64,000 nucleotides of DNA from Blastocladiella emersonii ATCC 22665. Taxonomy: Eukaryota; Fungi; Blastocladiomycota. How positions within the stretch are numbered: position 1 is the stretch's first letter; every line of letters begins with the position of its first letter. The notes beneath the pieces were generated by a model, which was given only the letters and a program-made list of their open reading frames with translations, was not told where the DNA came from and did no database searches. Position numbers and translations under genes: made by a program. Of this stretch, positions 47,147-52,721 are shown piece after piece. The DNA is taken from NCBI GenBank assembly GCA_025594325.1, contig JANHCV010000001.1, forward strand, positions 2,046,001 to 2,110,000. Direction: 5' to 3'.

Positions 47147-48697
47147 ATGGAGCTCCAGCAACTTGATGATCCCGGCCGGCAGTCCAAGGCCGCGGGCCGC
47201 CGAATGAGCCGGTTCCGCGAGGGATCCGAGGTGAACCTCCTGCGCCTTTCCGGGTCGAGCACAACACTAGGTTCTCTCCCTCCTGATGACTTCCGCGGCA
47301 GCATTGCCTCGCTGCAAATCGATACACGGGCTCCTCCCGCGCCGAAGGGCGAACCTCGCTCGGCGCGACCAAAGAAACGTGCCGAGTACCTCGACCGCCT
47401 CACTCAAACTGTCCCACCCCGCGCGTTTCTGCACCGTGACCCCGACAGTATCGGCGCAAACGAGAAAGGTTCGTTCATGACCTCGCCCGTCTCCGCCTCG
47501 GCCTGGTCGCCCGCGATCATCTCGCCGATGCGCGAGTATCTCGACCAGCTGCAGCTCTTCCTTCTCGCACGCGGACCGTATCCCGGACCAGGAGTGACAG
47601 AGGACACGATCCGGTCTCCCGATCGGCCGTTTGACCCGCTCAAGCTCTCGCCCGAAGCCAACAAGCTTCGAGGACGCGAGCCCGGGCTCAAGGAGCGCTT
47701 CCTCTTCGTTCTCTACCAGGTCGTGACCATCCGCTACGTCGTCCTTCCGCCTACGCACCCCGAAAAGGGCGGCCCGAAGCGGATCGAAGCTTGCGCTCAA
47801 GGCGGGTCGTGGCCCATCTTCACCCGCGGCCTCGCGGTCATCCAGATCGCGCTTCTCGTATACATTTGCGTACAAGAGGGGCTCGCGCCCTTGGACGAGA
47901 ACGGTCTCATCGGGCCGTCCTTTCTCTCGCTCATCAACTACGGCGCGCCGGTTCCGAGGTACGAATGATGCATCTCGAGCCTTGGACACGCCGCTCATTT
48001 TGCCCATCGTCTAGCCTCGTCAAGGAGCAGTTTGAGGCGCAGAGCTGGCGCCTGCTCACCCCGCCATTCCTTCACGCCGGCTTCCTCCATCTCCTCTCAA
48101 ACTTGTCATGGCAGCTCACGTCGGGCGTCATGCTGGAGCGCGCGTGGGGCTCGTGGCGGCTCGCATTCATCTTTCTCGTCAGCACCCTGTTCGGCACTCT
48201 CTGCTCGGTCCAGATCCGGTCCATCGAGGTCGTCATCGTCGGTGCGAGCGGCGGCGTTGTCGGGTACGGCTTTGCTTCTATTTCACGCGGGTCGCGCGAA
48301 CTGACCTCCCTGTGCGAGCAGAATGATGGGCTCGACGTTCGCCGACCACCTCATCAACCGCCGCATCATCTACCAGGCGCGATGGCAGCTCGTCTTCTGG
48401 GTCTTCAGCACCGCGCTCATGCTCGGAATCGGCCTGCTCCCGATCTTCGACAACATCACGCACACGGCCGGATTCTTTGCCGGGGTCGGAGCAGGCCTCG
48501 TCGCGATCCCGGACCTTACGGCATTCGACCGGGTCGGGCGGCGGAATCTCTGGGCGTACCGGATCGCGGGCATGATCATCCTCGTCGCCCTGGTCGGCAC
48601 GTCGCTCGCCACGCTCATGCACTCGATCCCGTGGCAATGCGGGTCGGCGTTCGACCGCGCGTGGTGCTGCTACCTGTTCCTCTCGCTCAAGTGTTGA
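47147..48697 (+). CDS. Rhomboid intramembrane serine protease (2 introns)
   Basis: WRLLT..FLHAGFLHL..N, catalytic VGASGG and DNITHTAGFFAG, with a long cytosolic N-terminus. Confidence 0.92.
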
Positions 48698-49957: not shown

Positions 49958-50965
49958 ATGAAGTCCAACACCGCCATCCTCCTCCTCGTCGCGCTGATCG
50001 CGCTGTGCGCGCCTGCCGCCGAGGCCCACTTCCGCCTGCTCTCGCCGCCGCCGCGCAACCCGGGCTTCTGCGGCGCCTTTACGACGGGCGACTGCCCCTT
50101 TGGCGGTTTCGACAAGTCTCGCGCCAACCCCAAGACCAGCACGTTCCGCCGCGGGCAGTCGGTGGCCGTGACATGGCCGCGGAACAACCACCCGGCCGGG
50201 TTCATCAAGCTCGCCATCATCCCGTTCGGCTCGCCCGAGACGCTCGACAACATTGACAAGAACATTGTGCAGTTCTCGTGCCACGAGGCGACGTGCAAGT
50301 CCGGCTTCCCCAACGATCCGCTCGGCGGTGACAACAAGCCCGAGGACACCAACATCTGCTCGACCTCCGTGACCATCCCGTCGTACCTCCCCGACGGCGA
50401 GTACTCGCTCTTCTGGTCCATCTACGGCGCTGGATCATTTTTTGGACGAATCTTCCAGGGACAGACTGATTATTACATGATGTCCGACTTCACGCTGTCG
50501 GGCGGAGCGGCGGTGGACCCGTCGTTGCGTCCGGCGTGCCCCAAGTTCATCCCGGGCGACGCGCACAACCCCGCGTCCAAGGGCGTTTGCAAGTTTTTCG
50601 GCACCGGTAAGGCCATGTCGTGCCGTCCTGACGGTTGCAGTGGGTCGTACCGCGACGGTATCCCGGTCGAGCTCGCGCAGTGCCTCGCGGCGAACCCCGG
50701 CGCGGGCAACGGCGCCAAGCCCGCTCCCCCCGCCCCGACCTCGTCCGCCTCGGCTCCCGCCCCCACCTCCCTCGCTCCTCCCGCTGCTCCTCAGCCCACG
50801 TCTGCTGCACCTGCCCCGAAGCCGACTGTCTCTCCCCCGGCCCCCAAGCCGACGTCGGCCGCGCCCGCGCCGAAGCCCAAGCCGACCATCCCCGCCGGCT
50901 GCCCCAAGCGCAAGACCGTTACGGTGACCAAGACGGTGACGCGCGCCCCGCGCTCGACCGTCTGA
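49958..50965 (+). CDS. Secreted histidine-brace (LPMO-like) protein, paralog 1
   Basis: A 23-aa signal peptide ending AEA, then His24 at mature position 1. WPRNNH78, TIPSYLPDGEYSLFW and D-Y172-Y173 follow, then a Cys-rich module and a Pro/Ala/Thr linker. Confidence 0.7.
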   Translation: MKSNTAILLLVALIALCAPAAEAHFRLLSPPPRNPGFCGAFTTGDCPFGGFDKSRANPKTSTFRRGQSVAVTWPRNNHPAGFIKLAIIPFGSPETLDNIDKNIVQFSCHEATCKSGFPNDPLGGDNKPEDTNICSTSVTIPSYLPDGEYSLFWSIYGAGSFFGRIFQGQTDYYMMSDFTLSGGAAVDPSLRPACPKFIPGDAHNPASKGVCKFFGTGKAMSCRPDGCSGSYRDGIPVELAQCLAANPGAGNGAKPAPPAPTSSASAPAPTSLAPPAAPQPTSAAPAPKPTVSPPAPKPTSAAPAPKPKPTIPAGCPKRKTVTVTKTVTRAPRSTV

Positions 50966-51758
50966 TGGTGAGTATGACGATGTGTTTGTGAACATATAGC
51001 TCGTTGTCCCCTCAATACTTCAACCATCCGTCAACTTTGCTTGAGCGAAGGAAGCGACGCGTTCGCTCTAAAATGTGCTCGTTGAGTTAAGCTTCGTCGA
51101 GAGTTGGAAACGAGTTCCTTCCGAAGGACCAAGATGATTCCCACGCTTGCATCCAGCACCTTGTGAACCGCGCGAGACTTGCTGGCACTCGCAGCTCAAC
51201 GACGCGATGGCTGGTGCCGCTCTGAACCAGGCTCTGAACGCTGACGCTCGCCGGACACACGTTTAAGTCGGAAATTTCATCACTCGTTGATCCTCGAGGT
51301 GAGAGCCGAGAACAGCGCGACTCGCACGCTCGCGACGGCGAGTGGGAGACGCGTCGCGATATCAGGTGACGGCGGTTTCAAGCCTGAGGCGCCAGGTGAC
51401 ACCACGCGCGGTGATTGGCTGGATCAGCCCGGCCACGCTGGTCCACTCACCACGCGTCGATCATCCCGCCTCGCCGCCACCGAGCGAACGAAAAAAGAGA
51501 AGGTCGCTGTGCCACCGACCGCGGCCGCGCAACACAACACAGCACAAGGGTCCCTCACCGCTCCGCTTTCCTCGAAAACGGCGACTGCTATAAGAGGCGC
51601 GCGCTGCTGCGGAAGCCATCCACGCTCCCGACCCACTCAAGACCTCCACTAGAAGCCCGTACGTCCTTGTGGCGCCGTTGCAACGGTGTTGCATGACGTT
51701 GCTCGTGAGCACAGATAGACTGATAGGACCCGACGATCCGGCGTGTAGTGCTGCGACC

Positions 51759-52721
51759 ATGAAGAAATCGCTCACCCTCTCGATCCTGGCGCTGGCCGTC
51801 ATCCTCGCCCTGACCGCGACGGCGCCCACGGCCGAGGCCCACTCGCGCCTCCTGTCGCCGCGCCCGCGTTACGGCGCCTACTGCTCGTACCACTCGTTCG
51901 CCACCGACGAGGTGTGTCCCGCCGCCGGCTACGCGCCCAAGGAGCTCGCCAATCCCGACGCGCTCGTGTACAAGCGCGGCACTGCTGTGCCGATTGTCTG
52001 GCCCCGGAACAACCATCCTGGCGGCTTCATCTCGCTGTCGATCATCCCGTTCGACATGGAGGAGACGTTCGAGAACTTCGAGGCCAACGTCGTGCAGTGG
52101 TCGTGCCACGAGGCGACGTGCAAGTCGGGCTACTCCAACGACCTGCTCGGCGAGGACGCTCCCGGCACGCCCGAGGACGGCAACCGGTGCTCGACGACGC
52201 TCACGATCCCGACCTACCTCAAGGACGGCAAGTACACGGCCCGCTGGGCCTGGAGCAACGGCGGCGGCTTCCGCGTCATGGAGCGGGGGCACGTCGACTA
52301 CTACTCTGCCTTCGACTTCACTGTTTCTGGTGGCTCGTATGACGCCTCGTCGCGTCCGGCGTGCCCCACGTTCATCCCCGGCGACGCCCACAACCCGGCC
52401 TCCAAGGGCGTGTGCAAGTTCTTCTCGACCGACGGCAGCAACTTTGGCTACCCGCGCGTCTGCAACCCCGACGGCTGCAGCGGCGAGCTGCGCGACGGCC
52501 AGCCCGGCCCGCTCCGCGACTGCCTCGCCAAGACCGGCACCTCGCTCAACGCCCCCGCTGCCCCCGCGCCCGCTGCTCCGGTCCCGAGCGTGACGGCCGC
52601 CCCCGTCCGCGGCGCCCCCGCCGTTCGTGAGCCCGACTGCTCGCCCACGGCCACGGTGACCGTGACCAACACCGTCACGGTCACCGTCACCGTGACCCCG
52701 GCGGTCGACGACGAGGAGTAG
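51759..52721 (+). CDS. Secreted histidine-brace (LPMO-like) protein, paralog 2
   Basis: A 27-aa signal peptide ending AEA, then His28 at mature position 1. WPRNNH86, TIPTYLKDGKYTARWAW and D-Y181-Y182-SAFDF follow, with the same Cys-rich module as paralog 1. Confidence 0.7.
   Translation: MKKSLTLSILALAVILALTATAPTAEAHSRLLSPRPRYGAYCSYHSFATDEVCPAAGYAPKELANPDALVYKRGTAVPIVWPRNNHPGGFISLSIIPFDMEETFENFEANVVQWSCHEATCKSGYSNDLLGEDAPGTPEDGNRCSTTLTIPTYLKDGKYTARWAWSNGGGFRVMERGHVDYYSAFDFTVSGGSYDASSRPACPTFIPGDAHNPASKGVCKFFSTDGSNFGYPRVCNPDGCSGELRDGQPGPLRDCLAKTGTSLNAPAAPAPAAPVPSVTAAPVRGAPAVREPDCSPTATVTVTNTVTVTVTVTPAVDDEE

Follow-up and report, generated by a model that had tools for sequence, protein, structure and literature searches.

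Two tandem secreted proteins with a predicted copper site and an LPMO-like fold belong to an uncharacterised family nearest AA11

We analysed a tandem pair of genes, gene 1 and gene 2, located at positions 49,958 to 52,721 of a 64,000-nucleotide stretch of Blastocladiella DNA (contig JANHCV010000001.1, positions 2,046,001 to 2,110,000 of the forward strand; this whole stretch is called the window). We observed that their products belong to a family with the fold of the lytic polysaccharide monooxygenases (LPMOs). This family is nearest to auxiliary activity family AA11, lies at roughly the same distance from all the solved families, and occurs eukaryote-wide and in giant viruses. The two proteins are very probably secreted histidine-brace copper proteins of the LPMO fold. 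We further consider them to be polysaccharide-oxidising enzymes of an uncharacterised LPMO family, with chitin as the first candidate substrate, and we give this reading a probability of about 0.6. Copper binding, catalysis and substrate are what we infer from the sequence features, family membership, fold and residue correspondences described below. A first-pass annotation, made from the DNA sequence alone, had come to a similar interpretation. It was partly supported and proved largely right, with three corrections that concern the register of the axial Tyr, the taxonomic range and the automated LPMO labels that already exist.

The leader peptides end in AAEA in gene 1 and in TAEA in gene 2, and in both cases the next residue is a His. 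The first-pass annotation had described this A-E-A ending with His as mature residue 1, and we found the leader pattern to be common to the homologues. In the 68 full-length homologues whose leader did not exceed 40 amino acids, an invariant His directly followed the hydrophobic leader (median 22 amino acids). Position -1 was Ala, Gly or Ser in 67 of the 68, and position -3 was Val, Ala, Ile, Ser, Thr or Cys. This comparison strongly supports a predicted cleavage just before the His, which would expose it as His1. Chance does not account for such a pattern, nor for the invariance of H1 and H55 in 78 homologues. A second His, within WPRNNHP[A/G]GF, follows His1 by 54 residues in gene 1, where it is mature residue 55, and by 58 residues in gene 2, where it is mature residue 59, and the motifs TIP.YL.DG.Y...W and DYY...DF were present in both proteins, all as originally read. 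When the two translations were inspected, neither had a hydrophobic C-terminus of the glycosylphosphatidylinositol (GPI) type, and a GPI anchor was rejected for this reason.

To the mature domain of gene 1 we fitted an AlphaFold2 model built on an alignment of 78 family members. The model was confident (predicted local distance difference test, pLDDT, 94.4; predicted template modelling score, pTM, 0.92), and it had the immunoglobulin-like (Ig-like) beta-sandwich of the LPMO type. The top matches in the PDB using Foldseek were AA15, AA11, AA16, AA10 and AA9. In an exhaustive VIA search of the model against 48,161 representative PDB chains, ranks 1-24 were all LPMO or LPMO-like (Z 7.0-10.5), while unrelated Ig-like folds began at Z 6.5. 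In every LPMO row of this search residue 1 of the model was the first aligned residue, and it was paired with the N-terminal His. The LPMO-like fold anticipated by the first-pass annotation was thus confirmed in the model, with LPMOs and LPMO-like proteins alone among the best matches.

The families were compared further using VIA-align, and the order that we obtained (AA11, Z 10.3-11.2; AA15, 10.3; AA9, about 9 up to 10.2; AA13, 9.8; AA10, 9.7; AA16, 8.7) was the same as in the exhaustive search. Weaker matches in the VIA search were LaX325 (Z 8.5, over 126 residues), the NIS1 effector (Z 7.5), AA14 (Z 7.0) and the Phytophthora sojae 'oxidoreductase B' (8S71; Z 6.3). Identity to the structural matches was 12-18%. 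The alignments with AA11 and AA9 extended to about model residue 217, whereas those with AA10, AA13, AA15 and AA16 ended near residue 160. Because AA11 and AA9 align through residue 217, the Cys-rich C-terminal 60 residues belong to the domain, as in AA9 and AA11. We had considered these residues as a separate binding module, but this was rejected, since they were modelled confidently within the domain and AA11 and AA9 align across them. Judged from the model, the proteins form a family-level branch of their own, with no solved family clearly ahead.

We also evaluated the relation to the named families at the level of sequence. The first-pass annotation had found no named family by eye, and in agreement with this neither window protein matched a Pfam LPMO model (AA9, LPMO_10 or BIM1-like) even at E<=10. 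The lone sub-threshold Pfam match of the window proteins, Orthopox_B11R, was judged spurious. With phmmer, the gene 1 protein found no LPMO or AA11 chain among the PDB sequences at E<=10, the only match being to its low-complexity tail. Among the 78 members the Pfam matches were to AA9 in 23 (mostly sub-threshold), to DUF7492 in 14, to BIM1-like in three (weak) and to LPMO_10 in none (at E<=0.1). Three relatives, two from Pythium oligandrum and one unnamed, narrowly passed the AA9 cutoff of 27.8 bits (29.8-32 bits), which explains their UniRef name. A profile of the 78 sequences matched AoAA11 (42 bits, E 8e-10) and AfAA11B (E 4e-9) over the whole domain, followed by AA9s (E 2e-6 and weaker) and AA16 (E 0.39); no AA10, AA13, AA14, AA15 or AA17 chain of the PDB was matched by it at E<=10. 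We read the AoAA11 match as similarity at the level of the superfamily.

AA11 (AoAA11, 4MAH/4MAI; AfAA11A, 7P3U; AfAA11B, 9EXJ/9HDG) was therefore the nearest solved family by both profile and structure, a likeness that the first-pass annotation had already pointed out. The common elements are His1, a second His near residues 55-60, an axial Tyr followed by x-x-Cys, the G-x-Y-x-L-x-W-x-W strand, a loop Glu (I-E-G-G-C in AA11, C-x-E-x-x-C here) and a C-terminal part that aligns within model residues 1-217. Like the window proteins, AA11 proteins are fungal and secreted, and disordered tails are frequent in them. AA9 (PF03443) resembles the family in its fold over model residues 1-217, in the Y-x-x-C register and in the weak Pfam matches, but its second His is at about residue 86 instead of about 55, and its His-Gln-Tyr second sphere is absent here.

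Such similarities raise the question of whether these proteins are simply divergent members of a family that CAZy already has, namely AA11 or, in the oomycete branch, AA9, and have the function of the chitin-active AA11. AA11 is the best match by both methods, the order of the elements and the Y-x-x-C register are common to AA11 and AA9, three relatives pass the Pfam AA9 cutoff, and UniRef names relatives after LPMO domains. The widest taxon of CAZy AA11 is 'Opisthokonta' (PMC10952591), so that AA11 may include entries from outside the Dikarya. However, the identity to AA11 was only 12-16%, the lead of AA11 over AA15, AA9, AA13 and AA10 was at most 1.5 Z units, and the window proteins themselves found no LPMO either in Pfam or in the PDB. 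Both hallmarks of AA11 were missing, with Asn in place of the Ala two residues before the second His and Gly, Ala, Thr or Pro in place of the Glu of Glu-x-Tyr. The R-N-N-H motif is specific to the family described here, an Asp precedes its axial Tyr, and no X278 module was seen in it. AA11 is mainly found in the Dikarya, whereas this family is found in early-diverging fungi, Pythium, giant viruses and probably red algae. In addition, the nearest ESM-Atlas cluster, which is from Zoopagomycota, has no Pfam 38.1 family assigned, and a Hotpep/CUPP survey listed no LPMO for Allomyces or Catenaria (PMC6690862). We therefore regard membership in an existing family as rather unlikely.

Two other families were considered and rejected. 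AA15 was evaluated on account of the UniRef names, the fusions to GH18 and the oomycete, algal and viral occurrence. AA15 and AA10 (PF03067) share the LPMO core with the model (Z 9.7-10.3), and the Catenaria and Allomyces relatives are called 'Chitin-binding type-4 domain-containing' in UniRef. However, the structural alignment ends at about residue 160, none of the 78 members matched LPMO_10, the family profile matched no AA15 chain, and AA15 has its second His at 91-96 instead of 55. Oomycete AA15 is 43% identical to TdAA15A, as against 17% here. AA17 was considered for the Pythium members and rejected, as neither sequence nor fold gave a match: no chain with this title appeared in the profile search (E<=10) or among structural matches of Z>=5, the presence of an AA17 chain (6Z5Y) in the searched sets being unchecked.

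When we examined conservation at the putative copper site in the 78-sequence alignment, H1 and H55 were invariant. Position 149 was aromatic in every member (Tyr in 63, Phe in 11 and Trp in four), while position 150 was variable. The alignment of the family profile to AoAA11 paired H1 with H1, H55 with H60, Y149 with Y140 and C152 with C143. The AA9 alignment paired Q-A-Y-P-Q-C with G-D-Y-x-S-C, and the AA11 counterpart of this stretch is E-M-Y-M-N-C. Since the Cys three residues past the Tyr anchors the AA11 and AA9 alignments, it is the first Tyr of D-Y-Y that is axial, and the Asp is at -1. The first-pass annotation had named His1, the second His and a distal Tyr as the copper site; the two His and the aromatic residue do align to the copper site of AoAA11, but the register of the Tyr did not hold. 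The annotation had D-Y-Y replacing the E-x-Y or Q-x-Y of AA11 and AA16 (the Gln-x-Tyr of AA16 being as stated there only), and this was one residue off, the -2 slot being taken by Gly, Ala, Thr or Pro. With the corrected register, the family departs further from AA11 and AA16 than by an Asp in place of Glu or Gln.

These columns could also be explained if the products, like NIS1, were secreted binding proteins or effectors that bind no metal and are only built on an Ig-like LPMO scaffold, with a structural role for the His residues. Ig-like sandwiches are common, and NIS1 is among the structural matches. However, NIS1 covered only about 110 residues of the model, all the better matches were copper proteins, and the two His and the axial aromatic residue were kept in every one of these diverse sequences. 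We consider this explanation very improbable.

As deduced from the alignment, the signature of the family is H1-S-x-L-x-x-P; W-x-R-N-N-H-x-G-G-F-[VI]-R; C-x-E-x-x-C; P-x(4)-D-G-x-Y-x-L-x-W-x-W; and D-[YFW]-x-S-C. The pair C26 and C152, the latter three residues after the axial Tyr, occurred together in 74 of the 78 members, and because of this co-occurrence the pair points to a disulfide beside the axial Tyr. Both Cys were lost only in the three Blastocladiella sequences of the alignment (the two window proteins and a B. emersonii protein), and this lineage would have given up the predicted bond. The same three sequences carry a local C15-C23/26 pair instead.

In the mechanism that we propose, removal of the signal peptide would expose His1. 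Its amino group and side chain, together with H55 (H59 in gene 2), would hold copper as a histidine brace on a flat face of the beta-sandwich, with Y149 (Y154 in gene 2) buried beneath the metal. The enzyme would then carry out a copper-dependent oxidative attack on a structural polysaccharide, for which chitin is the best guess, either to remodel the fungus's own wall or to attack a substrate. The tails would act as flexible extensions rich in Pro, Ala, Ser and Thr.

Clues to the substrate were sought among the fusions of 91 longer family members. One relative was fused to a GH18 chitinase (E 6e-80), two members carried CBM18 (best E 2e-16), one carried CBM2 and one ricin-B, and the other fused domains were PKD/EGF or the P-domain. 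Most members, including the window proteins, carried only a Pro/Ala/Ser/Thr-rich tail, and disordered C-terminal extensions are common in LPMOs (PMC8615602). AA11 is chitin-active (PMC8668981). The affinity to AA11, the chitin-walled or chitin-attacking hosts and the fusions together make chitin the best guess. A possible role on chitin had been suggested earlier, and the GH18 and CBM18 fusions in relatives provide a link to it. The tail ends of the two proteins (50831-50965 and 52557-52721) each show an odd-numbered lone Cys followed by a Thr-Val repeat, which reads C-P-K-R-K-T-V-T-V-T-K-T-V-T in gene 1 and C-S-P-T-A-T-V-T-V-T-N-T-V-T-V-T-V-T-V-T in gene 2. Wall attachment and oligomerisation are possibilities for these ends.

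Several points weigh against a polysaccharide-oxidising enzyme. The family lacks the canonical second-sphere Gln or Glu at -2 of the axial Tyr: this slot is Gly in 33, Ala in 10, Thr in nine and Pro in nine of the 78 sequences, with Gln in one and Glu in none. A Gln or Glu occupies this position in every functionally characterised LPMO and in over 96% of the sequences of AA9, AA10 and AA11 (PMC10472438). In 74 of the 78 an Asn fills the distal-axial slot, which lies two residues ahead of the second His within a near-invariant R-N-N-H; the Ala found there in AA11 and in chitin-active AA10 shapes the distal axial position (PMC8668981). That H1, H55 and Y149 come together at one site is read from homology and from alignment to AA11. 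The chitin-related fusions occur in only a few members, and the window's own two proteins carry no carbohydrate-binding module (CBM). Finally, Pythium and probably red algae, which do not have chitin-rich walls, leave other substrates possible.

The hydrogen-bonding group that the Gln or Glu provides may come from another position of the backbone, as in SmAA10A, which supplies its second-sphere group in this way. If the protein is catalytic, the part of the missing canonical residue would have to be played by N53, E87 or D148. E87, the Glu of C-x-E-x-x-C, is Glu in 56 and Asp in 10 of the 78 members, and aligns with the Glu in the I-E-G-G-C loop of AA11. D148, directly before the axial aromatic residue, is Asp in 61 and is placed by the model in the turn ahead of the strand. 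Should D148 extend to the copper, the site would be like that of X325, in which an Asp carboxylate takes the fourth copper position and no polysaccharide activity was found (PMC10952591; PMC7924993).

It is here that an LPMO-like copper protein that does not cleave polysaccharide has to be weighed, either of the X325/Bim1 type, acting in copper acquisition or buffering, or an H2O2-producing oxidase like AA16. The altered surroundings of the metal (no Gln or Glu, an Asp by the axial Tyr and an Asn in the distal-axial slot) would then block or redirect catalysis. LaX325 and AA16 have the same histidine-brace scaffold (Z 8.5-8.7) and a conserved Asp near the copper-site aromatic residue, and proven polysaccharide cleavage is lacking in them as in the family here. 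The weak BIM1-like matches in three members and the missing CBM also fit. However, X325 was a poorer structural match than AA11, AA15, AA9, AA13 and AA10, and its domain is about 140-150 residues long, as against 220-230 residues with an AA9/AA11-like C-terminal part here. The window proteins gave no match to the X325/BIM1-like model (PF20238), and they lack the hydrophobic C-terminus, whereas Bim1 is GPI-anchored (PMC10952591). The GH18, CBM18, CBM2 and ricin-B fusions in relatives fit work on carbohydrate, not metal trafficking. We consider a copper protein of this kind unlikely, although it is the alternative to be taken most seriously, and a polysaccharide-oxidising enzyme remains our preferred reading. 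That the family would deserve the rank of a new auxiliary activity family in CAZy, sister to AA11 and with a different second sphere (distal-axial Asn, no Gln or Glu, conserved Asp-Tyr), is a proposal that we make tentatively.

The size of the family was estimated by searching an eight-sequence profile against 1.84 billion cluster representatives. This gave at least 560 family representatives at E<=1e-3, and 410 at E<=1e-10. Homologue searches by word index gave only a few proteins with names, and the taxonomy of the members was taken from cluster look-ups. The closest relative was a hypothetical protein of Blastocladiella emersonii, with 83% identity, and further Blastocladiomycota relatives were from Catenaria, Allomyces, Paraphysoderma and B. 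britannica. The Zoopagomycota members were from Neoconidiobolus and many Coemansia species, and the oomycete members from Pythium oligandrum and P. brassicae. The model also matched AlphaFold-DB clusters (template modelling score, TM, 0.71-0.79). Judged from their UniProt accession numbers, these clusters probably belong to Conidiobolus, red algae and Pythium; red algae are thus probably among the hosts. Full members were found on three giant-virus contigs, two of them IMG/VR uncultivated virus genomes (UViGs) of 412-473 kb and one a giant-virus metagenome-assembled genome (GVMAG). These members have a signal peptide, H-[ST]-x-L, R-N-N-H, D-F-x-S-C (with Phe as the axial residue) and Thr/Pro-rich tails. 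One of the nearest ESM-Atlas clusters was mostly from Nucleocytoviricota. No prokaryotic relative was found in one pattern scan of 185,579 genomes, which had limited sensitivity. The first-pass annotation had spoken of a family in a zoosporic fungus; the Blastocladiomycota host agrees with this, but the range is clearly wider.

In a maximum-likelihood tree of 23 family members, gene 1 and the B. emersonii protein formed a pair (100/99 support) that excluded gene 2, indicating that the duplication is older than the split from the B. emersonii of that protein. Gene 2 itself was on a long branch and took no fixed position in the tree. Paralogue arrays were also seen in Paraphysoderma, where three consecutive accession numbers belong to a single 58-kb contig, and in Allomyces, where two genes share a contig. 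The Catenaria and Allomyces relatives P0004, P0005 and P0006 have a C-terminal 4-Cys domain with the precomputed Pfam label PF27672, which is missing in both window proteins.

We found no description of the family in the literature when we looked for the UniProt accessions, for DUF7492/PF27672 and for LPMOs in Blastocladiomycota or Zoopagomycota. To our knowledge, the family has neither a Pfam model nor a characterised member. In UniRef, relatives bear the automated names 'Chitin-binding type-4' or 'AA9 catalytic domain-containing', so that a hint of the LPMO likeness already exists, and the family itself is uncharacterised. As the fold and the general chemistry are also known, the gain is limited to that extent.

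LPMO families have each opened up an area of biology or biotechnology, such as biomass for AA9 and AA10, arthropod development for AA15, oomycete virulence for AA17 and copper uptake for X325. The branch described here has hundreds of members in lineages where LPMOs have hardly been studied, namely Blastocladiomycota, Zoopagomycota, Pythium, giant viruses and probably red algae. A copper site without the Gln or Glu of the rule is a natural test of the need for that residue. If the proteins are active, the 'universal' Gln or Glu would be dispensable, and they would represent a new class of chitin- or wall-active oxidative enzymes. In zoosporic fungi this could bear on the remodelling of the wall from the wall-less zoospore to the walled thallus, or on the attack of hosts that contain chitin, for example the nematodes on which Catenaria is a parasite.

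The coordinates of the two genes and of the giant-virus members are given in Table 1. The proteins of gene 1 and gene 2 are 48% identical over 312 residues (E 5e-83), and a tblastn search within the window found them to be the sole copies, with no third. Both genes appear to be intronless, as stated in the first-pass annotation; the support for this is indirect and comes from the uninterrupted open reading frames (ORFs) and from the LPMO-fold domain, which can be aligned end to end with homologues. The TATA-like boxes that had been noted were also present upstream of both ATGs.

Table 1. Features of the tandem genes (positions in the window) and family members on giant-virus contigs (positions on each contig)
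Feature	Position	Strand	Remarks
Gene 1 ORF	49958-50965	+	335 aa, protein P0001; read from the sequence
Gene 1 TATA-like heptamer TATAAAA	49748-49754	+	about 205 bp upstream of the ATG; read from the sequence, putative
Gene 1 signal peptide	49958..50026	+	23 aa, end A-E-A; hydrophobic core, small residues at -3/-1; layout as in 68 homologues
Gene 1 LPMO-fold domain	50027..50695	+	mature residues 1-223; AlphaFold2 model, VIA alignments, AoAA11 profile alignment
Gene 1 site residues	H1 50027-50029; N53-N54-H55 50183-50191; D148 50468-50470; axial Y149 50471-50473	+	
Gene 1 Pro/Ala/Ser/Thr-rich tail	50696..50965	+	lone Cys, then T-V repeat, stop codon; from translation
Gene 2 listed ORF	51669-52721	+	starts at GTG
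Gene 2 from ATG 51759	51759-52721	+	320 aa, canonical leader, protein P0007
Gene 2 TATA-like heptamer TATAAGA	51589-51595	+	about 165 bp upstream of the ATG; read from the sequence, putative
Gene 2 signal peptide	51759..51839	+	27 aa, end A-E-A; leader layout common to homologues
Gene 2 LPMO-fold domain	51840..52538	+	48% identity to gene 1; keeps the conserved columns of the family
Gene 2 site residues	H1 51840-51842; H59 52014-52016; D153 52296-52298; axial Y154 52299-52301	+	
Gene 2 Ala/Pro-rich tail	52539..52721	+	lone Cys, long T-V repeat, acidic end, stop codon; from translation
Giant-virus family member, L001	3767-4414		full member
Giant-virus family member, L002	4962-5954		full member
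Giant-virus family member, L003	517-1527		full member

An in-frame ATG was also seen at 51693, and no stop codon separates it from the start of gene 2, which lies 66 nt downstream. If this ATG is used, 22 residues would be added ahead of the signal peptide of gene 2, and the predicted cleavage site would be unchanged. The upstream neighbour of the pair (47791-48500, + strand) encodes a rhomboid-protease domain (Pfam Rhomboid, E 1e-19). Its long ORF runs past the domain into low-complexity sequence, and the true gene therefore probably has introns or ends earlier.

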